Positions 5,272-36,453 of a stretch of 64,000 nt of DNA are shown one piece after another. The DNA is taken from sequence record NC_031126.1; one strand, given 5' to 3'. Every line of letters begins with the position of its first letter. The first letter of the stretch is position 1. A program made the position numbers and the translations under genes. The notes under the pieces are model-generated. The model worked only from the letters and a program-made list of their open reading frames with translations, was not told the origin of the DNA and ran no database searches.

Positions 5272-5274
5272 GTC

Positions 5275-14175: not shown

Positions 14176-14201
14176 AATGACCACAACAAAGGAGAATAAT
14201 T

Positions 14202-14756: not shown

Positions 14757-14763
14757 ATTTGGA

Positions 14764-15330: not shown

Positions 15331-15349
15331 AACGCCCTAGGAGCGATTC

Positions 15350-16063: not shown

Positions 16064-16194
16064 TGGAACACCTTAATCAGAAAGTACCCCACCAGAATGG
16101 AGACACTCAACCACAACACCGCAGGAGGCGGATCATCATCCGTAAAAAACGCATTCAATTTCTTCTGGAATAATTCAGGCAAATGTCTTTTCAT
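16060..16194 (-). CDS. Small single-pass membrane protein, 44 aa (not in ORF track); possible holin/antiholin-like
   Basis: Manual translation MKRHLPELFQKKLNAFFTDDDPPPAVLWLSVSILVGYFLIKVFQ*; AGGA RBS; TGA overlaps the DUF1353 GTG (GTGA coupling). Confidence 0.65.
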   Translation of the reverse strand: MKRHLPELFQKKLNAFFTDDDPPPAVLWLSVSILVGYFLIKVFQ

Positions 16195-16210
16195 AGTGGG
16201 GTCCTGTTGA

Positions 16211-16813: not shown

Positions 16814-16851
16814 AACTAAGTCCTCTCATGTAATTGCATTAGTCATAACAA

Positions 16852-16892
16852 CAAAAAAATTAAAAGAGAGTGTGCCCCGAAGGGCACACCGT
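16852..16892 (-). terminator. Intrinsic terminator ending the radical SAM cassette
   Basis: On the minus strand GTGTGCCC-TTCG-GGGCACAC followed by TCTCTTTTAATTTTTTT. Confidence 0.8.
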
Positions 16893-16893: not shown

Positions 16894-17550
16894 TTACGCC
16901 AGGTTTTCTTCCTTGGCCATTGCCATCACCGCAGTGAAGTCATTCTGCTCTGCCAGCGTGCGAAGTTTTTGTTTCTTCACATTCAGCGCCATATGTAGGT
17001 CATTATCACGTTGGATAATCGCCGCATACAGTTCCTGCACGTTTGCCAAATCAAACGGCTCGACTGGGGTGTTCATCGCATCAATCCAATACATCGGGTC
17101 AACCGCAGACTGAATATAACCAGCCAGAGCAGCACGCGATTTCTCGGTCGCTTGATAACGACGCTCACCAACAACAATGTCTTCGTAACGCAGGTTTTCG
17201 TAACGGGTATTCAACTCACCCAAGATACGGTTAAACTCACGCCACATGTGGCCGACTGTCGACGCCAATCCTTTACGGATATCATCTAACGGCAGCTCCA
17301 GCACATCTGCGATAAACTCCTTGGTCTTCTTCATGATGAAGTTGACCTCAACATCAGACAGGTCGTAACCTTTTAAAGCAGCGATTGCTGCCTTGTCTGA
17401 CATTCCGTTTAACAGATGGTAATGCAGGAGAGTACAGAACCCCTGCTTAGTTGCATCTTCGCTGCGGTGAATCGCCTGATAGTTACCATGACGGTCAATC
17501 GGCGCTCCCATCTCGAAGTAACGACGTTTTATTTCGTCATTATTAAGCAT
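16894..17550 (-). CDS. DUF4376-like tail-fibre-associated/assembly protein
   Basis: C-terminal half R....R...I.V....YQA.EKSR..L.G.......YWIDA.N..V.......EL..AI..R....H.....K matches the DUF4376 pattern, recognised by eye. Confidence 0.7.
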   Translation of the reverse strand: MLNNDEIKRRYFEMGAPIDRHGNYQAIHRSEDATKQGFCTLLHYHLLNGMSDKAAIAALKGYDLSDVEVNFIMKKTKEFIADVLELPLDDIRKGLASTVGHMWREFNRILGELNTRYENLRYEDIVVGERRYQATEKSRAALAGYIQSAVDPMYWIDAMNTPVEPFDLANVQELYAAIIQRDNDLHMALNVKKQKLRTLAEQNDFTAVMAMAKEENLA

Positions 17551-18086
17551 TCATTCGCTCCTACCAGCCCCAGTTCCATCGCCAGCCCGAAATCAAACAT
17601 CTGGAAATCGGTCTCTAACTCATCACCGAAGTGGAAGTTAAGAGTTTTGGCTTCGTCCTGGTTCTGTTCCATATATCCAAACACCATATGCATCTCTTCC
17701 CCGAAAGCATCATACTGCTCCAGGGAACGACAAGCACGCACGCGGATCTCAGGCCAGTTCATGGCGAGACCTAACAGATTTTCGGCATCCATATTGCGCG
17801 TACTACGGCGCAGGATTTCGATTTTGTGGCGCGGGAAGGTTTTGATGCGTTCCTCGATACCGGGGTTACGCTTCTCCACTTCCTGCAACGAGAGATGACC
17901 ACCTTCCAAACCAGACAGTGGAACAATCACGTTCAGCCCAAAGCGAACACACAGGGCTTCCACTTCCTTGGAGAAGTCTTCAGCCGGTACAATCGCGTGA
18001 ACGTTGTACAGCTTATGTTTACGGAGAAACAAGTCTACCAGGTGAAGACTACGCTTCGTAAAATTGTGTATTAGCAGGGACTTCAT
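17529..18086 (-). CDS. Hypothetical protein in the radical SAM cassette
   Basis: 185 aa; GGAG RBS; overlaps both neighbours; no recognised motif. Confidence 0.7.
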   Translation of the reverse strand: MKSLLIHNFTKRSLHLVDLFLRKHKLYNVHAIVPAEDFSKEVEALCVRFGLNVIVPLSGLEGGHLSLQEVEKRNPGIEERIKTFPRHKIEILRRSTRNMDAENLLGLAMNWPEIRVRACRSLEQYDAFGEEMHMVFGYMEQNQDEAKTLNFHFGDELETDFQMFDFGLAMELGLVGANECLIMTK

Positions 18087-19389
18087 TCGCAGGTGCTCCT
18101 AATTGAGTTTTCTTTTCTGCCTCAGAGCGAGCACGTACACAAGATACGCAATAGCACTGGGTTTTATCGTTCAAGTCGGTGTAGCGGATTGTACCGGTCT
18201 TCTGATAGAAGTATTCGGCTACAAGCAGCTTAGCCGTCGTCCAACCACATTGGCGACGTTCGCCGTGGTATTCGCGACGTGCTTCCAGTTCACCGTCCCC
18301 ATTTTCGTACGCAGCAGCAGCACAGCTACCACAGGCGTGTTTCATTGGGCAACCCAGGCAAGTTTCTGGGTAGTTAGTGTACTGCTTATTGATTTCACCT
18401 AACAGCTTACCGCCGTCGGTGTTCACAATCTCACGCCCCACGAGTTCGCCAATAGCCTGACGCGTGGTAACGGTTGACATGAAGCGGTTACAACCGTAAA
18501 TCTTACGGTCAAAGCCCAGGCAGGTCATGTGCGTTACGGTACCACAGAATGGACGCACACGCTCAGGGTCGAGACGAGTAGCTTCATCATCCAGCAGTTT
18601 CTGACGCCAATCCGGGTCCCACGTTGCCATGAAATCCAGGCCATCTGGGAAGATGTGAGTCAGACGGTTACGCGGGTCTTTCTGCAAGCCCTTTTCAAAC
18701 CAGTAGTCGATAACGTCCATCATCTGGTTAGCAATTTCCAGAGCGGAACTACGTGGCAGCACATCTTCGTACGTCACGTTACCGGACAGTGTACCACCGC
18801 CAGTGACATCAATCAGGTGCTTCATTGACGCGCCATATTTCGGCAGCGTATCAGCAGTGAAAGTAGCCTTCACACCCAGCTCGAGGATTCCCACGGACTT
18901 GAGGTAGTTATAGCCCTTCATAGCCTTCTCGTACGAACCTTCACGCGTGGTAGTGAAGATACGGTACTTATCATGCACTTCCGGCAGGCCATCAATAGAT
19001 ACGCCGATCGACAGTCTGTCTTTCCAGCGTTCGATGATTTCGCGGTTCAACGGTTTGTCAAACAACGTACCGTTTGTGGAGATAGAGAAGATAACATCAC
19101 GACCATCACGAGCGGCCAGTTCTTCTGCGGCTTCAAATACACCCAGCAGAATCTTCGGCTGCATCATTGGCTCGCCACCGATGATGTCGATAATCACTTC
19201 CACGTTCGGGAGGTGACGGTCACGGTCGAAACACGCATGGATGAAGTCTACCGCATCTGCTACTTTGTTGTTACGCGGATACTTACGTTCGTAGCAATAC
19301 TCACAATCGAGGTTGCACGACAGGTTGGTCACGACCTGATAGGTCTTTGTGATTTTCGGCTCTACGGCCGGAATGAAACTATCGCGCAT
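18049..19389 (-). CDS. Radical SAM/SPASM peptide maturase, CXXX-repeat target family-like (TIGR04115-like)
   Basis: CNLDCEYC (CX3CX2C), IIGGEP, STNGTL, SIDG...HDKYR..GSY; SPASM cysteines C..C..GCNRF..CLGCPMKHACGSC..C; extra C-terminal CYCVSC. Confidence 0.93.
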   Translation of the reverse strand: MRDSFIPAVEPKITKTYQVVTNLSCNLDCEYCYERKYPRNNKVADAVDFIHACFDRDRHLPNVEVIIDIIGGEPMMQPKILLGVFEAAEELAARDGRDVIFSISTNGTLFDKPLNREIIERWKDRLSIGVSIDGLPEVHDKYRIFTTTREGSYEKAMKGYNYLKSVGILELGVKATFTADTLPKYGASMKHLIDVTGGGTLSGNVTYEDVLPRSSALEIANQMMDVIDYWFEKGLQKDPRNRLTHIFPDGLDFMATWDPDWRQKLLDDEATRLDPERVRPFCGTVTHMTCLGFDRKIYGCNRFMSTVTTRQAIGELVGREIVNTDGGKLLGEINKQYTNYPETCLGCPMKHACGSCAAAAYENGDGELEARREYHGERRQCGWTTAKLLVAEYFYQKTGTIRYTDLNDKTQCYCVSCVRARSEAEKKTQLGAPANEVPANTQFYEA

Positions 19390-20284
19390 TGTTTAGCCCC
19401 GCCTGAATAGTTCGATTGATGTACTTGTACGCATCAAAGCCGATGACTTCGGCCAGACGGTTACACCCAGAGTCAATAGTATCGACTGCATTCTGACTCT
19501 GCTCAAAAGTCGAATCCGACTTCACCCACACCAGTTGGCTGCAATCGTCACAATGCTGAGCGAAGAACTTATTGATGCTCAGTGGAATGTGCGAATCGTT
19601 GATACGATTCAGATAGGTCAGCTGCTCGTGCATTTTGTTGTAGCCGTACATGAAGTTCATGACGTGGTCAGGCGACAACGGTTTGGGCATGAAGTTATCG
19701 AACATCAGACGGAAGCCCTGGAACCCGTAGTGATACGTCGCACGGTGCAGTTCCAGTAAATCGTCCTGCCAGCGCTTATCACCCAGCTGCTCACGGGTTA
19801 CGACAGACCACAGGCTCACGTTATTGAGAGCGTGCAGGGTATCAAACACCTCAAAGCGACCTTCTTCTGCAATACGCAGTAAAGGACGTTCTGATTTTTC
19901 GTATCCGTCAAACGAGACGAAGATACGGTCAAGCTGGGAGAGTAGCGGAAGCTGCTCAGGGCTCAGACGCAACGCGTTAGTGTACATCTCGTGTTGCAGG
20001 TGCGGGTAACGTTCTTTCAGTTCTGCCATGAACTCCTGGATTTTCTTGAAAGCCAGCAACGGCTCTCCGCCTGTCCAGTTAATCTGGCGGATTGATGGAT
20101 GCTTTTCCAGCACCTCGAACAGTTTATCTTTCTGGATGTCGCGCGCAACGTCCTTGACATCCATATACCCCGCACCACCACAGAAGCTACAATCTAAGTT
20201 GCACTTCGAGGTGGTAACGATAGACAGTTCCATGGGAGTGTCTGTCGGGTCGCGACGAATGGCCGACACAGCTTCTTCACTCAT
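19379..20284 (-). CDS. Second radical SAM protein (short, Twitch-like C-terminus)
   Basis: CNLDCSFC (CX3CX2C), WTGGEPLL, YTN.L, VSFDG; only CDDC and GC as C-terminal cysteines. Confidence 0.9.
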   Translation of the reverse strand: MSEEAVSAIRRDPTDTPMELSIVTTSKCNLDCSFCGGAGYMDVKDVARDIQKDKLFEVLEKHPSIRQINWTGGEPLLAFKKIQEFMAELKERYPHLQHEMYTNALRLSPEQLPLLSQLDRIFVSFDGYEKSERPLLRIAEEGRFEVFDTLHALNNVSLWSVVTREQLGDKRWQDDLLELHRATYHYGFQGFRLMFDNFMPKPLSPDHVMNFMYGYNKMHEQLTYLNRINDSHIPLSINKFFAQHCDDCSQLVWVKSDSTFEQSQNAVDTIDSGCNRLAEVIGFDAYKYINRTIQAGLNNAR

Positions 20285-20305: not shown

Positions 20306-21193
20306 TTATTCGAATGTCAGTGCGAACAGTGGGTCTTCTTTGATGTCCACACCCTGCTTCAATACGAAGGGGTCATGGTAGGCAGCAAGAATCTTGTTCA
20401 ACACTTCATGACGCTCGTTAATGCGTTCCAGGTCATCGAGAGTAACCTTACGTTCGAGGATTGCACTAGCGGCCACTTGCTCTTCAACGCTCAGGTCAAC
20501 CTTCTGCATTAAGAAGCTCACCAGCTTCGTTAAGTCTGCTTCGGTACCCGGCGCTTCACCGTATTTCCACTGCACCAGATACTGCATCCACGGCTTGCGG
20601 ATACGCTTGGTGATTTCGTGTTCGTCGGTGATGGCAACAAATTTCTTCTCGCTGTGCAGCCATTTAAACTTATAGCTGAATGCTAAAAGGTCAAGCATCT
20701 TGTGGATGCCAAGGCTTTCGTAGCCTTCGATTGGGTAATAGATTTCTACCCCTTCGTAGTGCTCGGTTTCCGCAGGCACTTGCGAATACCAGAATGGCAG
20801 AGAACTCGGGTAGTCCCAGCTCCACTCACGACGCACCATTGGCTTGAGACCCGTTTCTGCAAACGGCGTCAGCAGCATTTCCAAATCACCGCACTGGTTC
20901 AACACACCATCGCTGAAGAAGTATTTACGGTCAATGAACTTGCCGTTGATTTCCTGCTCACCGGTATTCAGGTAGATATGCTCAACCTTGTGCCCAGCCA
21001 ACATGTAATCATTCAGCACTTCGAAGTTTTTCGGATTGATTAACTCACGTCCGCGAACCTTCGGCCATTCAGCAGGCAGCTGAGTAATCAACAGGATTTC
21101 GCCTGTCAGATGATACTTCACGCTGTCATAGATGCTGATTTGTAATGGAAAGTTTTGCGTTGTGCGAAACGCAAGGTGCATATCGTTCTTCAT
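20306..21193 (-). CDS. Hypothetical protein in the radical SAM cassette
   Basis: 295 aa, GGGGAG RBS; lies between the Cys-rich peptides and the radical SAM genes; aromatic-rich N-terminal part, helical C-terminal part. Confidence 0.75.
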   Translation of the reverse strand: MKNDMHLAFRTTQNFPLQISIYDSVKYHLTGEILLITQLPAEWPKVRGRELINPKNFEVLNDYMLAGHKVEHIYLNTGEQEINGKFIDRKYFFSDGVLNQCGDLEMLLTPFAETGLKPMVRREWSWDYPSSLPFWYSQVPAETEHYEGVEIYYPIEGYESLGIHKMLDLLAFSYKFKWLHSEKKFVAITDEHEITKRIRKPWMQYLVQWKYGEAPGTEADLTKLVSFLMQKVDLSVEEQVAASAILERKVTLDDLERINERHEVLNKILAAYHDPFVLKQGVDIKEDPLFALTFE

Positions 21194-21205: not shown

Positions 21206-21424
21206 TTAACGGTTTCCTGCCCCGTGACTACAGCCACCGCTGCACGTCCAGCTGCAAGACCCGCCGCAATTGTAATGCGATAGTGGGAGACCCGCCAGAT
21301 TGTTCGTGGTGCTTACCGTACCACTATTACGAATATAATCGTTCGCATCGTCGGTACGGATGTAGCCTTCCACTTGCACCAGCTTGTCTCTGATACTTTT
21401 AAGTGATATCACAGTAACCCCCAA
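21206..21424 (-). CDS. Cys-rich peptide 3 (short core), putative radical SAM substrate
   Basis: ISLK..RD.L..VE leader homologous to peptides 1 and 2; core CGGSCSWTCSGGC (4 Cys); likely start GTG 21412 or TTG 21424. Confidence 0.75.
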   Translation of the reverse strand: MGVTVISLKSIRDKLVQVEGYIRTDDANDYIRNSGTVSTTNNLAGLPLSHYNCGGSCSWTCSGGCSHGAGNR

Positions 21425-21459: not shown

Positions 21460-21855
21460 TTAGCGCATCGGCCCGGAACATCCTGAACATCCGGAGCAGC
21501 TTGAGCTGCACGATGAACTACAACCGCCTGTACAGGTTCCAGAGCAACCGCTAGAGCAGCTACCAGAGCAACCTGAACAGCCCGTACACGTCGACGAACA
21601 GCCTGACGTACAACTTGCAGAGCAACTGGCCCCGCACGTTCCTGATGCCGAGCCTGAGCATCCACCTGAGCACGATGAGCAGCTCCAACTACAGGTACCG
21701 CCACAGTCATAGTGCTCACGGGAGAAACCCCCGAAACGCTGTGAGTTATTGGTTCCCTTGTTGCGGATGTAGGTTTGTACACCGGCGGTGTTTTTCAATG
21801 ACGCAGCATCGATAGCATTAAGCCGGTTTTGAATATCTTTAAGGTTGATTGCCAT
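21460..21855 (-). CDS. Cys-rich CxxxC/CxxC repeat peptide 2, putative radical SAM substrate (TIGR04114-like)
   Basis: 50-aa Cys-free N-terminus MAINLKDIQNRL, then 20 Cys in a Ser/Gly/Thr repeat starting DCGGTCSWSC and ending CSGCSGCSGPMR; GGGG RBS. Confidence 0.88.
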   Translation of the reverse strand: MAINLKDIQNRLNAIDAASLKNTAGVQTYIRNKGTNNSQRFGGFSREHYDCGGTCSWSCSSCSGGCSGSASGTCGASCSASCTSGCSSTCTGCSGCSGSCSSGCSGTCTGGCSSSCSSSCSGCSGCSGPMR

Positions 21856-21864
21856 GTTTTTCCC

Positions 21865-22248
21865 CTACGGCCCCGAACAGCCGGAACAGCCACCGCAGCC
21901 GGAACCACAGGAACCAGAACAGCCGCTACATTTACCAGAGCAGCTACCAGAGCAACTCCCGGAACAACCGGAACAACCTGAACAGCCGGTAGAACACCCG
22001 CCTGTACATGCACCGGTACACGTTGAGGTACAAGTACCCGAACAACTCGTACACGATGCGGAACAACCATTAGAGCACGACCAGCTACACGTTCCACCAC
22101 AGTCCAACTGAGCAGGCGTCCAACCAGCGAAGCGATCCGCTGCGTTAAAGGCCCCTGATGCTACCTGGGGATCAACCCGAGGTCCAGTTGCGTAAGTGTT
22201 CTCCACGCTTTGCAGGCGGTCGCGTACGTTTTTTAATGAGATTGCCAT
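21865..22248 (-). CDS. Cys-rich CxxxC/CxxC repeat peptide 1, putative radical SAM substrate (TIGR04114-like)
   Basis: 49-aa Cys-free N-terminus MAISLKNVRDRL, then 21 Cys starting DCGGTCSWSC and ending CSGCSGP; AAGGA RBS. Confidence 0.88.
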   Translation of the reverse strand: MAISLKNVRDRLQSVENTYATGPRVDPQVASGAFNAADRFAGWTPAQLDCGGTCSWSCSNGCSASCTSCSGTCTSTCTGACTGGCSTGCSGCSGCSGSCSGSCSGKCSGCSGSCGSGCGGCSGCSGP

Positions 22249-22310
22249 ACGTTTCCTTTAATAAATAAGGGAGGACACTGCCATATAGACAGGTCCTCGC
22301 GTAAAGAGAC

Positions 22311-23516
22311 TTATTTGGTACCTGCTTCCGCCTGTACGTCGTCTCGAGAAGTAAGGCTCGAGTTGACGTGTACCGCAGCCTGAACCACACCGCCGTACTG
22401 CTTGTGGAGATATTTCGGGTGCGGGTTATCCGCATTGACGTGCGTATTCAGGTTCTGAGACACCGTCGAAATAGCAGAGGTGTTGTTGGCGACCTGTTGA
22501 CGCAGCGCCGTCAAGTCTTGCTGGAGCTGCTGAATCTGTTGCTGGGTATCTTGACCCGAGTTTTCCAGGTCAGTGATACGTTGATTCAAGCCCGCAATCA
22601 CCTGATTCTGGTCAGTGACCATTTTCTGGAGTTGCGCTACGAGGTCGTTCAGATTCGCCATCTGCAACGCCATGCGCTGATAGTTCTGCGCTACTGAGTT
22701 CAGCTGATCGTTCCAGGAACCCAGAGCAGCCACTACCGCATCAATGCGTTGGTTGATTGCCGTATCTGCCGCTTTCAAATCCCCGATGTCTGCCAGCACA
22801 GCATTGATTGCTGTCTGCACACCTTGAATCAGTGCACGGATTTCCGTTTCAGTTAAACCGTTCGCCTGATGGATATCCAAGCTGTGAACGTTACCTTGGG
22901 CGTTGATGTGATTATTCAGTGCAGCCATAAACTGCGTCTGCATATTCTCAATCAACACTTTCAGTTGTTCTAACTGTACGGTGTTACCTGAATTAATGCT
23001 GTCACGGATACCTGCCAGTTCGGTAATGATGTATTCAAAACCAAAGATGTCGCCGATGTCTTTAAAGGACGGAGCAGCCGCAAAGGTATCCGGTACATTA
23101 CGCAGGTCTTTGAAGTTTACCACACGGTCATCCAGGTTCGCGTCAATCAGCGCCTGTTTAATCGCAGCGATGTTCGCTGACTGTGGACCACCGGTGACTT
23201 GCGCACTGGCAACAACATCGGTCGGGATGGCGCTGTTTGTAACAACGACAGCCATACAGATTTCTTTGTTACCGGCAAGCTTCTGGTAAACGGGGTGGAT
23301 GTAGATAAGCTCGTAATCGACACCGCGCTTATACGTTGTGTTTGGCGAGTTCGCTGGTCGCAGTTTAAAGGTATCTGCGTAGAACGGCCCCGCCGGGAAA
23401 GCGAACGCACGGTTAACTTTCCCACCACCCAACACGATAGGAATACTGACGGCGTTAGACGTCATCTTCCCCGTGAGGTCGAGTGGATACTGAAGTAAAA
23501 TATCTGGCATGGCCAA
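22311..23516 (-). CDS. Tail fibre shaft / virion structural protein with long coiled coil
   Basis: N-terminal GPFY..../GVDY baseplate-type domain shared with the long fibres; Gln/Leu heptad coiled coil; H..ADNPHPKYL fibre motif near the C-terminus. Confidence 0.75.
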   Translation of the reverse strand: MAMPDILLQYPLDLTGKMTSNAVSIPIVLGGGKVNRAFAFPAGPFYADTFKLRPANSPNTTYKRGVDYELIYIHPVYQKLAGNKEICMAVVVTNSAIPTDVVASAQVTGGPQSANIAAIKQALIDANLDDRVVNFKDLRNVPDTFAAAPSFKDIGDIFGFEYIITELAGIRDSINSGNTVQLEQLKVLIENMQTQFMAALNNHINAQGNVHSLDIHQANGLTETEIRALIQGVQTAINAVLADIGDLKAADTAINQRIDAVVAALGSWNDQLNSVAQNYQRMALQMANLNDLVAQLQKMVTDQNQVIAGLNQRITDLENSGQDTQQQIQQLQQDLTALRQQVANNTSAISTVSQNLNTHVNADNPHPKYLHKQYGGVVQAAVHVNSSLTSRDDVQAEAGTK

Positions 23517-23549: not shown

Positions 23550-26500
23550 TTATAACCTCGGCATAAGATTAACGGCGATGTCTGTTGCGGTTTCCAGTCC
23601 ATTCAACCCTACCCATTTTGTTGCGACGATCATCGAGGTGGCATCCTCAGCAACAATAACTGGTGGTGAACAGGAACAGTTACCGGCAGAAACAACAGGC
23701 CAGAAGTTCTTCGTCGTGGTCGGCAACGTGATGGTTTCAGCATCAATAACACAGTTTGGAATCTTAGCATTGACGCTACTATAGGAGAGCGGGGTATCAA
23801 CGCCAGATGAAGCCAATAATGTCTCTGTCGTACCATCGAAATCATAAATGGCATAAGCACACCATTTAGACCCAAGCACTAAGGACATCGCTGGTACAAT
23901 CATCGACTGCATATCCACCACCATACGCTGACCCGGCGTTACCGTGAAGGTAGCCGAATTCGCATTCCCCGGAGAAACCACGATAGGTACACCGTTGGTC
24001 TGGAATGTCGTATCCCCGGACGTAGCAGCTTGAAGATAAATGTAGACTTTGATTTGTGATTTCGTTGGAGTAACCAACGGCCTCATCCACCAATAGGTAT
24101 TCTCAGGAATCGTCCCAAGGTTAATACCAGTCCACATCAGCCCTTTGGCTGCTGCCGCAGAGTTTTCCGCAGCCGTTGCTAAAGCACCGGACGCTTTTGG
24201 GAAGAACTTAGCAGCTTCATTTCCAGGTTCCCCGATTGCCCACACTTTCGGTGTTTTGATAATGGTCGCACGACGTTCAGAACGCTTCTGCGGTGAAATC
24301 ACCGAGTTGCTGTAACGCGCATCAAGATATGCCGGAGTTGTGGCCGGTTGCATTAACATCTCTTTGCGGAGCAGCCCTATCGGCGATAATGCTTGGTCAG
24401 TACGGCGGTCTACGTCATGACGGTATTCTGTCCCGGCGTGTTCCAACATCTGTTTCAAGCCACCCATACGCTTCACCTTCTCAAGTTGAGTGTCGATGAT
24501 GCGTGAGCTGTCTGTCGTAATCGTCCCCAGATACAAACGGTTATCAGTATCCGCCTGGCGTGTGTCCAGCAATTGGTACTGCGGAACGTTATTCACCAAC
24601 GCGACATGCACGTAGAAGATACGATTCTGGTAATTACCAGGGAAGGCGGATTTCAAATCAACGGAATAGGGTGCAGCACTATAATACTTCGCACCAATAC
24701 GCCAGCTGGTTGTTTCCGTCATGTAGAAGTTCCACCCTTCGGCGGTCTTCACCCCGGCCAGTATCTCTACCGGTGCACCAGACGGCACATACATCCCCGA
24801 CGCCATCCATTCGGCAAGTGACGCTGAACTCCCCGCACAGAACGCTGGCCCAATCGCATTTAAGCTCGTGAGGCACAACTTGTCCTTTAATGGCACCATG
24901 TACGAAGGATCGTAATTAGTACGATGCATGCGGAGATGTGCTACCGTCGCTACAAACGACGTACTGGCATCGTATACGATTTCCAAATTCAACGCACCCG
25001 TGTTACCCACCTGGTTAACCGTAAGCACGTTTGGAATATATAGGATACCTTTCTTGTCGGTGCCTTCACAAAGGATGGATTGGCCGTAACGGCGACCACG
25101 CCCACTGAAATCCGTAAGTGAGATATTAGTGGTAGTGTAGTCCAAGTCATTCGTCGACCAGATACGGGTGACCGTACTCACCGGGAAAGACACATCGCCT
25201 GTAGCTGAAACAGTCGGTGTTACTCGAAACAGGTAATAATCAATAAGCGTCTTACCGTTACGCACCGCCATACACGCAGCCTGTACCATCCATACGGCAT
25301 TAGATGCCTTAGGGCGGAACGTAAACAGCGAAATGAGCAGCTTGTCTGCGGCGTTGATACGCTCAAACGCAAACCCGTTCCCGGCACCTGACCCTGGAGA
25401 GGACTTTACGATGCCAATCAACTTGTTCCATTCGGTGGAAGAGATGTTCAATGTGTCTGACGTTGGAGTAGACCCAACGGCCTGATAGTTCTGGCTACCG
25501 GCCGCATCCCAATAGCAACCGTTTAAGGTGCCATCGTTAATCGCAGCAGTACACACATACGGCATGGTGGTCAACTTGAGATAAGTGTTCCAATCAAATG
25601 CCGTGCGGTTATTCGTCGGGCCAAAGCCACCGTAAGCCGGATCATATCGGGTGTTCGGATCGCACTCAACCAAGATAGCACGGTTAGCCTGCACTGGGCT
25701 CATCAGATAACTGTTTGAGCCCACGAACACCGGCGAACTCATGGACATCTCGTAGAGTGACCCACGGCCCTGGTCAAACGACCACGACGCCACACCGGGG
25801 GCACCAGGTTTCGATTTACCTGACAAGAAGTCAAACGCATCTAATCCATTCGGGAGTTTACTGGTACTGCAACCCGCCACAGAAGTAGTTTCTGGGGTAT
25901 CCCAGAATACCGTTAAGTTATCGCCATTAAACGACACATATGTGCGGTTATTGGCTGTACCGTTCGGCCACTTCACATCCTGATTGTAATCGTTAATCTT
26001 CACACCGTTGGCGAATGTGATTCCAGTCTCATCCACCACCATCGGGAAGATTTCCGGGTTATCAATGGCGATAGCCTTACTCTCAAAGTCGAAAGTAAAG
26101 GAAGTAGGCCACCGTTTAAAACCTTGGCCGCCTGATGCGTTAGCTAACCAGACCGATACACAAAAACCCATGCGGAACTGGGTGTTTTTCACGACACCTG
26201 CGCGGTTTGCATGGGGACCATGTTGTACGTTCTTTCCATCCGTCCAGAAATCCCACCCAGCTTGTGTGAAATAGTGAGTACCGTCGCGTTGATTGATGCG
26301 ATCGGTAAGCGTTGCTTTCAACAGTGTATAATCACCGTTGGTGCCAACGCCACCGGTCAGCGGGAAGTTTGTGAACACCTCGTTCGGTTTACCCGACCAC
26401 ACTGCCACGCAATAACGCGTATTGTCCAGAAGCGCCTTGATAAGATAAACTTTATCTTTATACACCACTAACTGCATGGTTAACGCATCCATGACCAACG

Positions 26501-28577
26501 CACGCGTCGCACCATCAATATTTTCCTGTGGCGGCGTGAACACCGAGACGGCCGTATGTTTAGCGTGATTGAGCGTACCGTTAAACAATATCAAATACTG
26601 TCTGCCGTCGGAGCCGAGAGCAACCATTCCGTCGTCACCCGGCAGGAGAATCTTCACGAGTCTCACACCCGGAGCCAGCGTCGCTAACCCTACCGGTTTA
26701 TACGTCACCGAGGTCTGTTGGCGGTTGTTCAAAGCACCACCATCCGTCATCTCCGCGTAAGCGTAATAGATGTTATCCGTTCCAGGAATCCCATCCGTGG
26801 CGTTACGCAGCACGTATAATGTACCGGCCTCTTTCCGCACCACACCCAGACGTCCATCACCGTCAAGACACTTTTGATAACCCGCGAAGTTACCTACGGT
26901 GGGTATCGGTAAGAAACCTGGGTTACCGAACTGTGAACCGGCCGTTGTCCATGCAGGCAGTAATTCATTCACAACACCTTTAACAGTGTTGATTTTCTGC
27001 TGAACGTTATAGCCTTGCTTCGATGTCGCCACCTTATTAGTTGTGGCATCAATAGCATCCCATAGTTGTACCAGACCCGCTACGGTATCAGACGCGGTAG
27101 GTACACCTGTCAAGTCCGCAAAGGTGTGGGTGTGGTCGCTCAGCGCTTTGGTGTTCAATACCGCACGGATAGCGGTGGTCACCGGCTTCTCATTCGGGGT
27201 GGTGTTCTCCACGTTCCCCAGACCTAAGTCAGAAGCTAACAGGGTCAGTTCCTGGTTCCCGGTACTTGGGTTAGTAACAAAGCCTTTGTTGTTGACTTTG
27301 TACGTGGCGTCCACGTAGTTATCCAGCGTGGTTTTCAGCGCAGTAACTGCTGCCTGGGAGATGGCCGCACCCGCAGAGATGTTAGCCGATACAGACGTCA
27401 CCAATAGCAGACCTGGTGTTGTTGTGGTTGCCGTTGGTACTACAGCCGTCATGTTAACCGGAGAGTAGTCTTTCGCACTACCATAAATCTTCACGCTGTC
27501 CGTGGACGAGAAGTAAGCATTGGCAGGTAACAACTTCACCGCAGATAGGTATAAAGAAACCATGTCTGGGGTAATCAAATACGCACCATTGAAGATAGGA
27601 GCCTTTGCGCCGGAGAGAGCATACATGGCGTTCAAGCCAGAAGTAACTTCTATCCCAATACCCGGTTCGTTCTTATCCGCATCTGCCGTAATAGTAATCG
27701 GCTTGGTGGTCGTGATAAGGAACTTGTCACCCTGCAACGTAATAACGTGACTGGAATCCGAAGTACGGAACGTCAACGCGCCGTTGCTCAGCACTTTCAA
27801 ACGGCCACGCAGTTCACCCAACACCACCGGCATCAGTGTATCGATATGGGTTTGTTGGATACCGTTACGTTTCATCAGGTCGACCAATTCATCAATGGTC
27901 TTACCGAATGCTTTGGTGGCATCCACAGCTTTGGTCAGTACCTTTAAGGCCCCCACTTCTTCTGCTGTGTATTGGTGAGCATTCTTCACCATGTGGTGCT
28001 GATACATGTTGTCGTCGAAGATTTTCTTGCCGTTGGCGAAGATAAGTTCGGTGACTTCAGTGTATGCATCATCCAACTCGCTGGCACGTTCGAGAATCCC
28101 TTTGCGGATGTCGTCAAGTGCCTTTACCACGTCATCACGAAGGATGGCTTCTTCTAAACTGGTCGGTGGGTCAATAGGAGCCACCACTGGTGCATAACGC
28201 ATCAGCTCAGACCAGTCGACGTTACGTGGGTCTTTCATGTCCGGTTTAACCAGGAACTTCCCGATTTCGGACTGCGGTACGCGATATTCACGACCGACGG
28301 AATAGATGGTGTAATTACACGACGTTTCGGTAATCAGCATGATGCCGCCGAAGACCTGGTCTTTCAGGGCTTCCGCAGCTTCTTTGAAATAGTAGCAAAG
28401 GTAGTAATCCAACCCCTCCGTCAATGGACGTGGGTTAGTGCCAGTGCTAGTCAGTTGTAAACCGGTGCGGTAGAACGGCCCCTCGGGCGGCACAACCGTA
28501 TTGTACCGGTTTGGGTACGTCTCTAGCTTTAGCGTCCCACTGAACGGGGCTGGGGCTGTCGTCGACATGAATAACAC
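23550..28577 (-). CDS. Long tail fibre protein 1 (1675 aa)
   Basis: Probable start ATG 28568. Shared N-terminal P..GPFY/G.DY/DW module, LGLGNVENT..KPV and HTH fibre repeats, large variable central domain. Confidence 0.85.
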   Translation of the reverse strand: MLFMSTTAPAPFSGTLKLETYPNRYNTVVPPEGPFYRTGLQLTSTGTNPRPLTEGLDYYLCYYFKEAAEALKDQVFGGIMLITETSCNYTIYSVGREYRVPQSEIGKFLVKPDMKDPRNVDWSELMRYAPVVAPIDPPTSLEEAILRDDVVKALDDIRKGILERASELDDAYTEVTELIFANGKKIFDDNMYQHHMVKNAHQYTAEEVGALKVLTKAVDATKAFGKTIDELVDLMKRNGIQQTHIDTLMPVVLGELRGRLKVLSNGALTFRTSDSSHVITLQGDKFLITTTKPITITADADKNEPGIGIEVTSGLNAMYALSGAKAPIFNGAYLITPDMVSLYLSAVKLLPANAYFSSTDSVKIYGSAKDYSPVNMTAVVPTATTTTPGLLLVTSVSANISAGAAISQAAVTALKTTLDNYVDATYKVNNKGFVTNPSTGNQELTLLASDLGLGNVENTTPNEKPVTTAIRAVLNTKALSDHTHTFADLTGVPTASDTVAGLVQLWDAIDATTNKVATSKQGYNVQQKINTVKGVVNELLPAWTTAGSQFGNPGFLPIPTVGNFAGYQKCLDGDGRLGVVRKEAGTLYVLRNATDGIPGTDNIYYAYAEMTDGGALNNRQQTSVTYKPVGLATLAPGVRLVKILLPGDDGMVALGSDGRQYLILFNGTLNHAKHTAVSVFTPPQENIDGATRALVMDALTMQLVVYKDKVYLIKALLDNTRYCVAVWSGKPNEVFTNFPLTGGVGTNGDYTLLKATLTDRINQRDGTHYFTQAGWDFWTDGKNVQHGPHANRAGVVKNTQFRMGFCVSVWLANASGGQGFKRWPTSFTFDFESKAIAIDNPEIFPMVVDETGITFANGVKINDYNQDVKWPNGTANNRTYVSFNGDNLTVFWDTPETTSVAGCSTSKLPNGLDAFDFLSGKSKPGAPGVASWSFDQGRGSLYEMSMSSPVFVGSNSYLMSPVQANRAILVECDPNTRYDPAYGGFGPTNNRTAFDWNTYLKLTTMPYVCTAAINDGTLNGCYWDAAGSQNYQAVGSTPTSDTLNISSTEWNKLIGIVKSSPGSGAGNGFAFERINAADKLLISLFTFRPKASNAVWMVQAACMAVRNGKTLIDYYLFRVTPTVSATGDVSFPVSTVTRIWSTNDLDYTTTNISLTDFSGRGRRYGQSILCEGTDKKGILYIPNVLTVNQVGNTGALNLEIVYDASTSFVATVAHLRMHRTNYDPSYMVPLKDKLCLTSLNAIGPAFCAGSSASLAEWMASGMYVPSGAPVEILAGVKTAEGWNFYMTETTSWRIGAKYYSAAPYSVDLKSAFPGNYQNRIFYVHVALVNNVPQYQLLDTRQADTDNRLYLGTITTDSSRIIDTQLEKVKRMGGLKQMLEHAGTEYRHDVDRRTDQALSPIGLLRKEMLMQPATTPAYLDARYSNSVISPQKRSERRATIIKTPKVWAIGEPGNEAAKFFPKASGALATAAENSAAAAKGLMWTGINLGTIPENTYWWMRPLVTPTKSQIKVYIYLQAATSGDTTFQTNGVPIVVSPGNANSATFTVTPGQRMVVDMQSMIVPAMSLVLGSKWCAYAIYDFDGTTETLLASSGVDTPLSYSSVNAKIPNCVIDAETITLPTTTKNFWPVVSAGNCSCSPPVIVAEDATSMIVATKWVGLNGLETATDIAVNLMPRL

Positions 28578-28587
28578 TCCTGCTTTT

Positions 28588-28622
28588 AAATAAAAACGGA
28601 TACCGCCCCCGAAAGGGCGGTA
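28588..28622 (-). terminator. Intrinsic terminator
   Basis: Stem TACCGCCC/GGGCGGTA followed on the minus strand by CCGTTTTTATTT. Confidence 0.7.
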
Positions 28623-28657
28623 GCTTGCGGACTAAGCACGCCCGCAAGCGTGCCGTC

Positions 28658-31600
28658 CTATACCCAACCGCCGAAACCTGTGCCGTCTGCTTGACGTTCA
28701 GCATCCATACGGTCTAACAACCACTCCCACATCTTTTCTGTCATGTGATACGGATTGCGCCTTACCATCATGTACCGCTTCCCAGTAGAGAACAACTCAA
28801 GTGGACTTGCCTGGGTAAACGTTTCCAAGACATTGCCGGATACATCATAGGTGGTTAACGTGAAGGCAAGCTTCAACGGAACACCCATGCTACCTGGGGC
28901 AGTGAACTCCAGGAAAATTGTACTCCCGCCGACGAAGCGGTCACTGTACGGCATGATTTCTACCGAACGTGGGGTGGTGTCGTTTGTGGTCTTCGTCCAG
29001 GTCTTAGTAGAAAGACCAGAAGAGTCATACCACAAATTCCCGTCGTACGAAGAACTGATACTTAACACCGCACGATAGGGAATAGAGTCCGGGGCGAGTT
29101 TAATCGCTGCGGTAATATTCGCTATATGTGACGGCGCTCCGTTATCAGCCCACGCACCAAACCACTTCATCCCGGAGGCCAATTTCAGAGGCGAACCTTG
29201 TCTCTGACGTCCTGCCCAGAATGGTGTTGGTAAGAACCCGTCGTGTGACCGCCCTACCGTACCGCTGTCTCCCGGTAAAGAGACCCACTCCGTCGACAAC
29301 AGATTCTCCGCTTGTAACGAAGTCGTTGTATTAAAAGTGGTATTGTTGTTCGATGCAGTAGCCAGAAGATTCTGGGCATCCGCATACGACTCAAACAACG
29401 AACGATAATAGTGGTATTTGGAATCATCGAACCCGGCGGACGACATATCCATCAGCGTCGGCAGACCTGCATAAACCTCGGCTGTCCCTGTGGAAGTCGG
29501 ACGATTAAAACCAACAAACCCAGAAAGATAATGTTGGAAGTCAATGTCAAACTTCACTTCTACTTCGGTAAGTCGAATAGTTTCTTCGGCACCGGTATAG
29601 AACAGTTGGAAGACACGCAAGATACGTGTGGTGCAATCATAGCGGTAACGGATAGCCCAACGTGGAAGTTGCTTTACCAACGAATCCATATCGAGTGCCG
29701 CCTTGGCTGTGATATTCTCACTACGCAATACCGTCACGGTACACGGCGCATCAACCAACTGATATTCGGGTAACGTTGTCCGAGCGGCCGCGGTTGCGGT
29801 GAGCGTCTTAGCGAAACCAATCTTCGGTTTACCGCCTCCAACACTCCACTTCATGAAACGGTTACGACGATATACCGGGTCAGCATCCGCACCATCCAAA
29901 ACACCACCGAACACTAACTCAAAACCAGGATGTTCAGTATGCGTTGTGCGGTACAGACTGCTTGCCGCAACAATGAATCCACCTTCGATGGTAGTGTGTC
30001 CATCTGCTTTCGGGTTGAACGGGGTTGTCCAGCGCAAAGGCGTTTGGTTTTTCACTTCCCACAGGCAGAGTAACTCACCGGGGGCAGCAGCGGCTTGAAC
30101 ATTAATCATGGTCTTGTCGTTGCTGTTAATCTTCGCCGTCGGGCCGTATACAGCTAACCCCAGTTCGAAGATAGTCTTACCCATCGGAAGCATTGCCGCA
30201 TTGTCAGATAACCGCCAATCTGCCCTTGTAGCTTTGTGGGCATCCGTACGATCAGCGTGGTCAGAGATTTCTTTCGCCATCCCGAAGTCGAACGTTTTCG
30301 GGAAGGTAACAGACGCGACGGTAAGTCCACCAACCGGTAAGTCGACATAACCAATCAGGGCGTGCTCGATATCGATGTCTTGCGATTCGACAGGTTCTGC
30401 ACGGCCGTAGATAGAGCCCGTAACCATATTCAGATAGAGATAATGACGTAACCCATCAGGTTGAGTCACAAACTCCTGTAACAAGGCAACAGGCTTACCC
30501 ACGTCTGACCGGGCGAGTGGTGCTTTACCATCCCAAATCTCGTACATTAACGCAGCGGGCTTAGCCGTATCTGTACAGTCTGCACGAATGGCAACAGTGT
30601 GCGCCGTACCCTCGTCGTTCTCAAAGGGGACGGTAACGTACGCTGGCGAGTTAGCAGAGATTTTCTCTACCCCATCAACATACACTGTAATCTTACCTCC
30701 GGCAGCGACATAAATGTCTAGCTTTCCGGTAAGCGTTACCACACGTTCTTTTGCCAAAACGGATACCACAGACAGATTACCCATCTGTCCCGCAGTGACG
30801 CCCATCGGAACAGCCAGTAAAGGTAACGCTGGTTGGTTTGAAATGCCCGTCCAGTCCAGAGTACCGTTTTGCACAGAAGATGCCCAGGTACGTTCCATGG
30901 CGTTGTACGGACTAAACCATTGGAACATCGGTGTGGTCTGTAAATCGATTGTCCCACTGACTACACCCGACTTCTTTTCGCCTTGCGACAAGTAGAAGTA
31001 TTCCAAATCCTGTACGGTCAAGCCACGTTTAGTCGCAGCAACTGTCCAGGTCGACGCATTCACCGCTGAGAAATCTGTGGCAGCGCCAGGCTTCACATCT
31101 TGTACAGCCGCCGCGATAATATCCAATCGGTCACTCAGGGCTTTCAGGAGGTTAGGTGCCACCCCCTTCTGTGCCGCTAATCCGTCCTCGAGGGACGTGT
31201 AGCGCGCAATACCTTTCTGGCTGCTCGATGCTAAAGGCAACAGCAAATCATCCCAGGCGTGCTTGTGTCCCTTGATAGACAGTTCATCAAGGTCGACTTG
31301 CTGCTCTTGGGAAATTGGCTTGTTCATATCGGCAGTGTTATCAACATTCCCCAGACCGATATCCGCTTTCACTAAGGTGCGTGAACCTGTGTCCATTGCT
31401 CCTGAGTTAATCATGGTGGTCTTCGGTACATAACCGCTGGCCTTACCTTCATACGGTGTCAATGACCCCGGTGTAGCCGCCATGTTGGTTTCTGTGCCTG
31501 GTCCCGCTTTCAACTTCGCAATCCCTTTTACGGTAGTGCTCGCAGAAGGTGGAGTAAGTGTACCTTTAACCGGGTCAAGGCGTGACCCCTTCCCGGTAAA

Positions 31601-32749
31601 CGACACCCCATTACGACCTTGAATCCACAGCTTATTATCGTCAGGGTCAGTGCTACCACCCTCACTTCCGTCGCTCTGATATTCAAGCAACAGGTTCGTG
31701 GTGAGCAACACTTTTCCGTTCAACGTTAGCTTATCCATCCCCAGGCCGGTTCCAGACGACTCAATACGCAGGGTGTTCACCCCCGACTTCCATTCCATGT
31801 AGCGAATGGTTGTCTCTTCTGGGTTATAACCCGCGGACAGAATCACCGAACCGTTAGTCTTGATCGTAAAGGAAGTGTCTGTGAACGTAATCTCAGACGT
31901 GCCCGATTTCGATTTGAACAGAGAGCGGTTAGCGGCCAGTTGTTGGACAAATACACCATCGACATCTTTACATGCCCACTTTTCGATGTACATGTCGATA
32001 TCGCTTTGCTGGAGCCCCAGGGCACGTATTTCAGCAGTCAGGGTACGTAAGGTCTTCCCGTAGGCTAAAAACGTGTCAGGGGCTTTCAGGTTCGCAGGAT
32101 GGGCACCCGTTTGTGCTATCGTAATATCGTGTGCTTTATGGGTAGCGATATGCGCTGGGTAGTTAAAAGCGGTAATCTCGCCCTGTAAACCCTCGACTGT
32201 CACTTTCAACGCGTCGAGTTTATCACGAATCGCTTGGTTTGCCGTCCCTGCATCTAATTCTACATCGCGTACCGCAGAAGCCAGATATTTCTTGTTCAGC
32301 AAATCAGCCCAACTGGTTGCTGCCGGTTTAGGCGGATACAACGTCGGACGTTTATCGAGTTTCAACCAATCCACATCTACCGGGTTGTTCAGATGTTTCA
32401 CCAGGTAGTCGAGAATATCGACAAATGGCGAGTAGAACGTATCACCCAGGGTCTGTCCGGCAAAGCGCAGCGCACCCCCGATATCCGGGTTAATCAACTG
32501 CACCCCACAAAACACCGGGGAAGCCACCGAGTCCTCCAGCTCAGGAAGCTGGTAAGCCAGTTGGTAATCTTTCCCCAGTGTCAGTGGCGAGGTGCTACCC
32601 GCCACGGTGACGACCAGATTGAAGCCAAAGAAAGGTCGGTGGTCTAAAATGATAACCCGGTCTTCTGGTTTATCACCTTCTACAATCCGGTCTTCCAGGA
32701 AGGCGTTCTCAGGATTGGTACCCTTCCAGTCGTAAGGATACGATTGCAT
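28658..32749 (-). CDS. Long tail fibre protein 2 (1363 aa)
   Basis: Paralogous N-terminus (RPFF, GKDY, DW....RP..YPP), IGLGNVDNTADMNKPIS, GHKH, AS..KG.A repeats. Confidence 0.85.
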   Translation of the reverse strand: MQSYPYDWKGTNPENAFLEDRIVEGDKPEDRVIILDHRPFFGFNLVVTVAGSTSPLTLGKDYQLAYQLPELEDSVASPVFCGVQLINPDIGGALRFAGQTLGDTFYSPFVDILDYLVKHLNNPVDVDWLKLDKRPTLYPPKPAATSWADLLNKKYLASAVRDVELDAGTANQAIRDKLDALKVTVEGLQGEITAFNYPAHIATHKAHDITIAQTGAHPANLKAPDTFLAYGKTLRTLTAEIRALGLQQSDIDMYIEKWACKDVDGVFVQQLAANRSLFKSKSGTSEITFTDTSFTIKTNGSVILSAGYNPEETTIRYMEWKSGVNTLRIESSGTGLGMDKLTLNGKVLLTTNLLLEYQSDGSEGGSTDPDDNKLWIQGRNGVSFTGKGSRLDPVKGTLTPPSASTTVKGIAKLKAGPGTETNMAATPGSLTPYEGKASGYVPKTTMINSGAMDTGSRTLVKADIGLGNVDNTADMNKPISQEQQVDLDELSIKGHKHAWDDLLLPLASSSQKGIARYTSLEDGLAAQKGVAPNLLKALSDRLDIIAAAVQDVKPGAATDFSAVNASTWTVAATKRGLTVQDLEYFYLSQGEKKSGVVSGTIDLQTTPMFQWFSPYNAMERTWASSVQNGTLDWTGISNQPALPLLAVPMGVTAGQMGNLSVVSVLAKERVVTLTGKLDIYVAAGGKITVYVDGVEKISANSPAYVTVPFENDEGTAHTVAIRADCTDTAKPAALMYEIWDGKAPLARSDVGKPVALLQEFVTQPDGLRHYLYLNMVTGSIYGRAEPVESQDIDIEHALIGYVDLPVGGLTVASVTFPKTFDFGMAKEISDHADRTDAHKATRADWRLSDNAAMLPMGKTIFELGLAVYGPTAKINSNDKTMINVQAAAAPGELLCLWEVKNQTPLRWTTPFNPKADGHTTIEGGFIVAASSLYRTTHTEHPGFELVFGGVLDGADADPVYRRNRFMKWSVGGGKPKIGFAKTLTATAAARTTLPEYQLVDAPCTVTVLRSENITAKAALDMDSLVKQLPRWAIRYRYDCTTRILRVFQLFYTGAEETIRLTEVEVKFDIDFQHYLSGFVGFNRPTSTGTAEVYAGLPTLMDMSSAGFDDSKYHYYRSLFESYADAQNLLATASNNNTTFNTTTSLQAENLLSTEWVSLPGDSGTVGRSHDGFLPTPFWAGRQRQGSPLKLASGMKWFGAWADNGAPSHIANITAAIKLAPDSIPYRAVLSISSSYDGNLWYDSSGLSTKTWTKTTNDTTPRSVEIMPYSDRFVGGSTIFLEFTAPGSMGVPLKLAFTLTTYDVSGNVLETFTQASPLELFSTGKRYMMVRRNPYHMTEKMWEWLLDRMDAERQADGTGFGGWV

Positions 32750-32760
32750 TTATAGTCTCC

Positions 32761-35700: not shown

Positions 35701-36453
35701 AGGGCTTCCCCAATATCCAATTATAGTCATCCACCAATACGGGGCGGTGGATGCAGACACATAACTCGGTAGGTTATACGTTGCCTGGAATTTAAAATCA
35801 GATAAGGCGTAATTACTGGAGGATAATATCGCATACTGATCGGAATTTACCTGATTGGTAATAAATCCAGCCGAATTATCATACGTGAATCTAGGCTCGA
35901 TAAAGTCGTTGGCGACCCTAACCGCAGTGTTGTTCGCCATCGGGTCGGGGATAGGCGGAAGTTCCGTTATCTTTTTACCGATTTCAACGATAGCCTGCAT
36001 TAACTCACGTTCACCTTTCCAGTTATCCCAGTCAAACTGAATATCTACTGGCGGGAAATAAACATCACCGATTACATCTTCCCATTGACAGTCACTTGGG
36101 AATTTATTGGCATTCGCTGCTCGCTCAGCATTGATCTGTGCGGTAGTTGCTTCCCCTTTGCCGACGTAATGGGCAGTGATTGTGAAGCTCGAGGTGTATT
36201 TCGGGTTTACAATCCAAATCATCCCGTGCACAGACCGTCCAGTGCGCAACGTTCCGGTCATGTATGGATGGGTGATAAGATAGTCACCGCCGAGCTTTAA
36301 AACGGTAGAGCCGCTCTTCACGACCAGAGAATGGGAGTAAAAAGGGCCGTTAGAAGGTACCAGCATTCGGTACTTGGTGCCGATAACCGCAACCGCTAAA
36401 TCGCGGATTAAGTTCCCCGCTATATTCTGATGCGGGTCAAATTCGACTGCCAT
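32761..36453 (-). CDS. Long tail fibre protein 3 (1230 aa)
   Basis: Paralogous N-terminus (P..GPFY, GGDY, WEDV), inserted beta-sandwich-like domain, VENIAD..LP.S, GHTH, AT..KAGLVQ repeats. Confidence 0.85.
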   Translation of the reverse strand: MAVEFDPHQNIAGNLIRDLAVAVIGTKYRMLVPSNGPFYSHSLVVKSGSTVLKLGGDYLITHPYMTGTLRTGRSVHGMIWIVNPKYTSSFTITAHYVGKGEATTAQINAERAANANKFPSDCQWEDVIGDVYFPPVDIQFDWDNWKGERELMQAIVEIGKKITELPPIPDPMANNTAVRVANDFIEPRFTYDNSAGFITNQVNSDQYAILSSSNYALSDFKFQATYNLPSYVSASTAPYWWMTIIGYWGSPFRNATLELLNGDTFRFLITYDSFDKQESFVWATKTVDANFFKKPFTVTIDRKRSARTVELTITQDGVIVLHSLMDMNNPPAAFAARFIQLGIAVTLDRGTDFRFRHISSVGDSIKFSALPGATIEIPDGSDVLTLLKKYHSLVDKLYRESPAHAHILRKDNPHGDQSYGRMRAIELNGIADDATLAYGKSQAQLADYVNQRSAKATDFSDKMLRKSATPRTITGTFTMLPGLSSITSAKDTEASGVGTNLQVDDKVVRLIARDSSTISAGSQPITFNAGANVMVLYPDARELQWNGKKILDPTTVAPYLPGNEGGGSGIFYATPTATMTVSGSGIQSMPFIFTWVAPDDTDNAALALRMLTTEFGNSESLAATPALIQKLANEFTGKLEQAKAYINGLSLMSSVSLDKTSFNLDAVENIADLSLPTSSLQRQEMAKYAKNGHTHDASAFGIGDATTAKAGLVQFGGLVNDATLALEGQYVATQYDTVEKLEATVGNSDTEAIIDILRFGASGNNEVMNGGSFNGWMVVLNPNNYFVKKDYAVPTATFNLSELFPVNHEDTVIGVYVDIVGDTAQYVLKDSINFAETDTLTRIGEIYTDETQISGLSIRNTTRLGNFRELEEHAADVSAHIPRAMTQAQFGYTFTNDGPTWNNGVPGTRRFDGDWRMLKGPDYVPMENVDWPSSTSLLLKKTGTGVANHRHLVHQCPIKKSGNIVAAFSSSDVTASNVFEVVLASWKDSKERRNRISLLIQRTNNITGSEGTLCYLGFAINYGTNRQVLIGINASSFTTANDWQNMAASVTFNLDHNASGALQITGGVNVNPLGFTFSVDLVGKRVTFWRTYGAAAVTEAYDLAPYLTAAQVDISPLVSVPTWPVYHGIGGTLASDATVALTYDMGNFAPRPGYDTAFDYIHTLSEMNRIRVITAPSASKLSNADVRTAAAAKDMATAAKRPDGVPDYLNKDRLATYSDGVNYTAVVVRD

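Follow-up and report, generated by a model that had tools for sequence, protein, structure and literature searches.

The stretch of record NC_031126.1 analysed here (64,000 nucleotides; hereafter, the window) raises the question of why a phage would encode, inside a block of tail fibre genes, three short peptides of which two carry long runs of closely spaced cysteines (Cys), together with two radical S-adenosylmethionine (radical-SAM) enzymes. The window is 100% identical to Erwinia phage vB_EamM_ChrisDB, an SPN3US-like jumbo myovirus of 244.8 kb that infects Erwinia amylovora (subtracting 124,000 from a position in the ChrisDB record gives the position in the window). Based on the comparison of homologous loci, we are inclined to believe that the peptides are the split, trans-encoded form of a Cys-repeat module that is otherwise borne at the C-terminus of a fibre and modified by radical-SAM enzymes. 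More generally, phage fibres whose distal ends are cross-linked by such enzymes might be a new class of enzyme-matured virion structure, widespread among uncultured phages and prophages, and split into three docking peptides in SPN3US-like phages, a proposal to which we give slightly less than an even chance. The elements of the window on which the argument turns are the following, with lengths in amino acids (aa).

21865..22248, minus strand: peptide 1, 127 aa, 21 Cys (phrog_6085, E=3.6e-45)
22105..22143, minus strand: junction (pre-core) motif of peptide 1, residues 36-48 (alignments A1 and A7)
22072..22101, minus strand: C-x-G-x-C-S-W-[ST]-C-S box of peptide 1 (the CSW box; invariant or nearly invariant columns in A1 and A7)
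21460..21855, minus strand: peptide 2, 131 aa, 20 Cys (phrog_6085, E=6.4e-53)
21206..21412, minus strand: peptide 3, 68 aa from a GTG start, 4 Cys, with the same N-terminal region and CSW box
20306..21193, minus strand: 295-aa partner protein (phrog_8030)
19379..20284, minus strand: radical-SAM enzyme of 301 aa, without a full SPASM domain (PF04055, E=5.8e-14; phrog_1802)
18049..19389, minus strand: radical-SAM/SPASM-type enzyme of 446 aa (matches to NCBIfam families and to CteB, 5wgg)

The evidence that carries this reading comes from other phages, which we reached by following distant homologues of the 446-aa enzyme and then the contigs that encode them. In three unrelated, uncultured phages (contigs L033, L037 and L045), a protein ends in the junction motif and the CSW box, both aligned with those of the peptides in A7, and a Cys run, and genes of the 295-aa family and for radical-SAM enzymes come next. 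The siphovirus-like contig L033, which also encodes a tail tip protein of the GpJ type, carries its module on a 258-aa protein with fibre-type repeats (a sub-threshold match to the Pfam 'phage tail repeat'), the last 70 residues of which comprise the junction motif, the C..CSW[ST]C box and 13 repeat Cys, and the next gene encodes a homologue of the 295-aa protein (BLASTP 2e-14; phrog_8030 4.7e-12), followed by three radical-SAM genes. In L037 the same C-terminal end is found on a collagen-like tail fibre of 432 aa (phrog_5073, E=6.5e-52), which is followed by a 234-aa protein of the 295-aa family and by two radical-SAM genes, while in L045 it is found, with 28 Cys, on a 401-aa protein matching tail-fibre and minor-tail PHROGs. 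The radical-SAM enzyme of the fused forms is 36-39% identical, and phrog_6085, the family of the peptides, matches the fused proteins themselves (E=9.4e-6 in L033 and 4.3e-12 in L045). The junction was scored separately, taking the 13 residues before the first Cys, a position fixed beforehand, and comparing them by a position-specific scoring matrix (PSSM) of the jumbo-phage peptides with 6,924 background 13-mers. The scores were 19.6, 14.4 and 13.5 in L033, L037 and L045, respectively, with p between 3e-4 and 7e-4 for each and a combined p of ~3e-8 by Fisher's method. Against L033, the N-terminal 50 residues of the peptides also gave a match that is weak (7.7 bits) and correctly placed.

In the sub-clade closest to the window, the module is covalently attached to a tail fibre in six of the seven non-jumbo lineages and abuts a fibre gene in the remaining one; in prophage L034, a Cys-repeat peptide of 79 aa starts 2 nt past the stop of the gene for a 607-aa tail fibre. 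In every locus, the module has as neighbours a 295-aa-family protein and radical-SAM enzymes from the PapB/CXXX-repeat-maturase clade. Cys runs, with a different junction, also close the tail fibres encoded by L042-L044 (E down to 1e-55 with PHROGs). Locus L036, which lies at the end of a contig, and P0148, for which there is no DNA, added no information. The first ~30 residues of the window peptides have no counterpart in the fused forms; nothing like them is needed for recognition there, which would leave them free for another role, such as docking.

The peptides themselves have a clear architecture. Peptide 1 consists of an N-terminal region of 49 aa and a Cys-repeat core of 78 aa, and in peptides 1 and 2 about 95% of the core is made up of C, S, G, T and A, with Cys accounting for 25-27% and spaced 3-4 residues apart. 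The open reading frames (ORFs) therefore bear out what an earlier note on this DNA had read from the letters, namely 21 and 20 Cys in S/G/T/A-rich cores, and also its remark that peptide 2 has an Ala in place of one expected Cys, which leaves a single spacing of 8 residues. This Ala is kept in the Machina-, Erskine- and Seoulvirus relatives and is a Cys in CR5 and Kwan. The CSW box opens the core in all three peptides, including peptide 3, which lacks the long repeat, and all three match phrog_6085, a family with no assigned function. The ORF of peptide 3 (21206-21424) would give 72 aa if translated from a TTG and 68 aa from the GTG at 21412, the likelier start. That it could be a truncated or broken gene was considered and rejected, as the short core is kept in every relative. 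In L013, a metagenomic relative of 222 kb, the orthologue of peptide 3 (8001-8633) reaches 210 aa, with the N-terminus and the box followed by a beta-rich domain of 140 aa, which indicates that the N-terminal part of these peptides can head a larger protein. The best match of this extra domain is to the C-terminal part of a tail-fibre PHROG (E=0.13), and a structure prediction of the fusion (P0043), run without an alignment, was unusable, with a predicted local distance difference test (pLDDT) score of 31.7.

Judging from their substitution pattern, the three peptide genes are real and under strong purifying selection, because the comparison of ChrisDB with phiEaH2 gives saturated synonymous sites and a low ratio of nonsynonymous to synonymous rates (dN/dS), at ~0.05 in the cores and 0.14 in the N-terminal parts. 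The trio and its order are fixed in 30 loci, which span the Machina-, Erskine-, Seoul-, Derbicus- and Wellingtonvirus lineages and metagenomes. In these loci the number of Cys is invariably 21 in peptide 1, against 20-23 in peptide 2 and 2-4 in peptide 3, and the constant number in peptide 1 suggests a part of fixed length. Two of the relatives, from IMG/VR (L021 and L022), have ~960 nt inserted between peptide 1 and peptide 2, at about 1868-2829.

In spite of this conservation, the genes have systematically escaped annotation: reference genomes, among them that of the genetic model SPN3US, lack them or show ORFs on the wrong strand or in the wrong frame. RefSeq leaves peptide 1 of ChrisDB (21865-22248, minus strand) unannotated and calls instead a plus-strand ORF, gp188 (21854-22111, plus strand), the annotation of SPN3US has only a wrong-frame ORF inside peptide 2, and in the relatives it is mostly fragments or opposite-strand ORFs that are annotated at these sites (L009, 5425-5760, belongs to the same observation). 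In a collection of 5.8 billion proteins, only 2 members of the peptide family were found. With the peptides unannotated, proteomic studies could not have seen them.

The remaining features of the gene block that surrounds the peptides are listed below.

23550..36453, minus strand: three long fibre genes (1675, 1363 and 1230 aa), directly upstream of the 401-aa gene and on the same strand
22311..23516, minus strand: 401-aa short fibre-like virion protein (phrog_2163), with a conserved N-terminal domain and a coiled coil and no distal domain
22272..22298, minus strand: stem-loop between the 401-aa gene and peptide 1 (fold energy and compensatory changes)
17529..18086, minus strand: 185-aa protein, always in the cassette, the gene overlapping a radical-SAM gene
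16894..17550, minus strand: 218-aa DUF4376 protein (PF14301, E=1.8e-10), the last gene before the terminator
16869..16890, minus strand: intrinsic-terminator-like hairpin that closes the unit

Read along the minus strand, the order is thus the 1230-, 1363- and 1675-aa fibres, the 401-aa protein, peptides 1-3, the 295-aa protein, the 301-aa and 446-aa radical-SAM enzymes, the 185-aa protein, the DUF4376 protein and the hairpin, a strong one, after which come the endolysin and a DUF1353 gene named 'tail assembly chaperone'. The peptides are therefore encoded inside the fibre gene block, in a cassette that sits between the 401-aa fibre gene and the lysin gene, in the same place in all relatives examined, and no terminator-like hairpin is found from peptide 1 to 16890. 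The stem-loop ahead of peptide 1 has a fold dG of -23 kcal/mol (z -2.5), shows compensatory stem changes across 7 phages, with an invariant TATG inside the loop, and is followed by a U-rich tract. TATG is also the consensus of the phiKZ late promoter (PMC4666361), and the element might serve for termination, as a late promoter, or in both ways.

A total of 169 phiKZ-like genomes conserve the N-terminal domain of the 401-aa protein, in products annotated for example as short tail fibre or minor tail protein, and the protein itself covers positions 4-380 of the 574 in the phrog_2163 profile. Homologues in phages without the cassette are longer, that of a Vibrio phage having 515 aa and that of Goslar 682 aa, including a C-terminal Peptidase_S74 domain. 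In both phages, the lysin gene comes directly after, which places the cassette at the point where those fibres end and leaves the local fibre without a distal part. In SPN3US, the orthologue of the 401-aa protein (gp167) is present in virions and absent from tailless particles, and the orthologues of the long fibres (gp168-170) are tail proteins by mass spectrometry. Missing from the virion list are gp161-166 (the DUF4376 protein, a 188-aa protein, the two radical-SAM enzymes, the 295-aa protein and gp166, the wrong-frame ORF); the peptides had no chance of appearing on it, being unannotated or annotated in the wrong frame.

That the peptides are fibre parts had been proposed in the earlier note on other grounds, that is, an alignment of the pre-core motif with strings in the three long fibres of the window and a heptad helix at the N-terminus. 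All three strings are indeed there (1230-aa fibre, residue 433; 1675-aa fibre, residue 219; 1363-aa fibre, residue 225), but they resemble the motif no more than would be expected by chance. Among the 18,669 13-mers of the window ranked by a PSSM of the motif they came in at positions 89, 220 and 1503, and other positions of the same long fibres outscored them. A hidden Markov model (HMM) of the leaders, built from 24 peptides, matched only the three peptides when run against all ORFs of the window, an HMM-HMM comparison of the leaders with the fibre segments (hhalign) returned a probability of 0.8%, at another site, and BLASTP of the peptides against the long fibres gave no match. Searched against PHROGs up to E<=10, the leaders alone hit no tail-fibre family, and the leader HMM did not match the longer Vibrio and Goslar homologues of the 401-aa fibre. 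Against 1.84 billion proteins, the leader profile retrieved only family members and two repeat proteins of 577 and 1446 aa, which were rejected as artefacts with scores summed over repeats. As for the helix, the N-termini are conserved and hydrophobic at residues 5, 8, 12 and 15, in the a/d-like 3-4-3 pattern expected of heptads, but this pattern spans two heptads only. The proposal itself survives the loss of its motif evidence, since it is the fused fibre forms in L033, L037 and L045 that speak for it.

Turning to the enzymes, PF04055 is found in both, with a CX3CX2C motif around residues 25-32 (446-aa protein) and 28-35 (301-aa protein), and both begin directly at the radical-SAM core, without a leader-binding domain of their own at the N-terminus. 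The family of the 446-aa enzyme has seven invariant C-terminal Cys (alignment A6) and the enzyme aligns to SPASM families over most of their length, the Pfam SPASM model not being among the matches; the 301-aa enzyme has few C-terminal Cys. The best-scoring named family for the 446-aa enzyme is PapB, the freyrasin enzyme (NF047865; 126.4 bits, E=1.4e-36), well below its cut-off of 340 bits, and the two systems share substrates built from repeated Cys-X3 units. PapB makes Cys-to-Asp beta-carbon thioethers, while Asp and Glu are absent as acceptors from the cores of peptides 1 and 2, which means that acceptor residue and ring topology must differ from those of PapB. The only solved structure matched by sequence is CteB, the SCIFF maturase (5wgg), over the radical-SAM core (E=1.7e-10). 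CteB is likewise a thioether-forming SPASM enzyme and, unlike the phage enzyme, has an N-terminal peptide-binding domain, the match starting from residue 100 of its chain and residue 18 of the query.

A further likeness is to the CXXX-repeat system (TIGR04114, TIGR04115 and TIGR04117), which was defined computationally and whose product and function are, to our knowledge, uncharacterised. In both, tandem repeats with a Cys at every fourth position accompany a short radical-SAM/SPASM enzyme devoid of a leader-binding domain. They differ in that the enzyme of the window scores 114.4 bits against a TIGR04115 cut-off of 350, peptide 2 scores 14.5 bits against TIGR04114 (cut-off 20) and 15.4 bits against TIGR04117 (cut-off 50), and peptides 1 and 3 do not score at all; moreover, the window adds the 295-aa partner, a second radical-SAM enzyme, the CSW box, the junction motif, three paralogous peptides and the location in a fibre block. 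In the wider family, a related radical-SAM/SPASM gene is present in 85 loci of viruses or prophages, and 69 of these also have a Cys-repeat ORF, a single run reaching as many as 92 Cys; the enzymes of L047 and L088 pass the TIGR04115 cut-off (401.6 and 404.3 bits) and the repeat of L052 passes the CXXX-repeat cut-off (43.5 versus 20 bits). Because some loci of this wider family pass the NCBIfam cut-offs while the proteins of the window fail them, the window cassette is, on profile scores, a divergent relative of the CXXX-repeat system.

The same loci offer a few observations of their own. Very long Cys-repeat proteins, with 92 and 75 Cys per run, lie beside true TIGR04115 maturases in L047 (4789-6231) and L101 (5154-6596), and most proteins of this kind have a conserved N-terminal domain of ~105-116 aa. 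In L110 (3618-4733), a Cys-repeat protein continues, as judged by eye, into a region resembling the self-cleaving Hint/intein type.

The 295-aa protein has no match in Pfam or NCBIfam, its AlphaFold2 model (pLDDT 87.8) matches no fold in the PDB, and a scan of bacterial genomes with this protein found no relative. Its family comprises 12 loci, all in the sub-clade closest to the window.

If the peptides are indeed a split fibre module, the radical-SAM/SPASM enzyme would recognise the junction and the box, possibly via the 295-aa protein, whose help is proposed because neither enzyme has a leader-binding domain of its own. The Cys thiols would then be converted into a ladder of thioether-type cross-links, yielding a stiff thread resistant to proteases and to redox changes. 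The first ~30 residues, predicted to form an amphipathic helix and a linker, would dock the peptides onto a trimeric fibre, most likely the 401-aa protein, and the N-terminus would not be a leader to be cut off. We know of no virion structural protein shown to be matured by radical-SAM chemistry, and in the literature we found no paper linking these peptides or CXXX-repeat systems to tail fibres. Such a finding would provide a function for the uncharacterised and long-orphaned CXXX-repeat radical-SAM systems, and would suggest a new means by which receptor-binding fibres can be stiffened or protected. In being a C-terminal add-on to a trimeric fibre, the fused Cys tails resemble the Peptidase_S74 chaperone (PF13884) of fibres and endosialidases, which however is unrelated in sequence, autocatalytic and in no need of radical-SAM enzymes. 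The collagen-like and repeat-type tail fibres of L033, L037 and L042-L045 are alike in carrying a C-terminal module, whereas the window peptides have no fibre body.

We acknowledge that several points weigh against this explanation. The modification of the peptides, their presence in the virion and the retention of their N-terminus are predictions from sequence, and the fused forms come only from uncultured contigs. The virion list of SPN3US contains neither the enzymes nor the 295-aa protein, and since the 401-aa family also occurs in phages that have no cassette, it does not require the peptides. Their N-terminal 50 residues have no homology to any fibre that HMM, profile or PHROG searches could detect, the predicted helix of two heptads is short, and peptide 3, with almost no Cys repeat, fits poorly into a symmetric rod of three chains.

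Part of this evidence would suit other explanations. The absence of SPN3US gp161-166 from the virion list, for instance, would be expected if the peptides, or the fused tails, were trans-acting assembly aids that help fibre trimers to nucleate, or clamp them, while these fold, and are afterwards released or cleaved off, much as the self-cleaving Peptidase_S74 chaperone does at the C-terminus of other fibres, and thus missing from the virion. The Goslar homologue does carry a Peptidase_S74 chaperone where the 401-aa protein ends, the cassette closes with a DUF4376 protein near the DUF1353 'tail assembly chaperone' gene, and the distant L110 protein seems, by eye, to run into a Hint-like self-splicing region. 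We nevertheless consider an assembly aid unlikely, as a long repeat held at precisely 21 Cys in every lineage would, together with its two or three dedicated enzymes, be a heavy cost for a transient clamp, and neither a cleavage site nor a protease is evident. A somewhat smaller chance, in our opinion, belongs to an ordinary RiPP (a peptide made by ribosomes and modified after translation), from which a 50-aa leader would be removed to leave the cross-linked core as a free toxin, signal or metal binder released at lysis, the fibre neighbourhood being incidental. A leader-like region, a repeat core and an adjacent radical-SAM/SPASM enzyme are in fact the layout of ranthipeptide, SCIFF and CXXX-repeat systems, and the peptide of prophage L034 is free, with an N-terminus of only 14 aa. 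Among the cassette genes, however, no protease, exporter or immunity gene was recognised with Pfam, NCBIfam or PHROGs, the core is more conserved than the leader, and the covalent or abutting arrangement seen in the seven non-jumbo lineages does not suit a free product; fibre-gene linkage that recurs in unrelated phage types argues against coincidence.

Very improbable, finally, is a metal or iron-sulfur thread in which free thiols would chelate metal in the manner of a metallothionein, with the radical-SAM enzymes acting elsewhere or on the CSW box only. Cores so rich in Cys with small neighbouring residues would be compatible with it, and so would peptide 3, which retains the box and not the repeat. 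PapB and CteB, the characterised members of the enzyme clade, form Cys-derived thioethers, however, and the strict co-occurrence of long Cys runs with the enzymes, in 69 of the 85 loci, suggests that the run is what they act on.

Some further observations concern the distribution of the cassette and the rest of the DNA analysed. Among cultured phages, the enzyme clade is found only in the 62 SPN3US-like genomes. Many assemblies labelled 'Salmonella enterica' or 'Escherichia coli' hold the phage enzyme on contigs of ~240 kb, which indicates that SPN3US-like genomes are present in bacterial deposits, through carriage or contamination. In L033, the three radical-SAM genes lie in a row (6306-9134), and a 180-aa Cys-containing protein with a thrombospondin-type Pfam match is encoded at 10876-11418. 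At the beginning of the window (1-12956, plus strand), about 12 consecutive genes with recurring sizes of ~330, 300 and 480 aa, all annotated in RefSeq as (putative) virion structural proteins, probably form a paralogue family of baseplate or fibre proteins.

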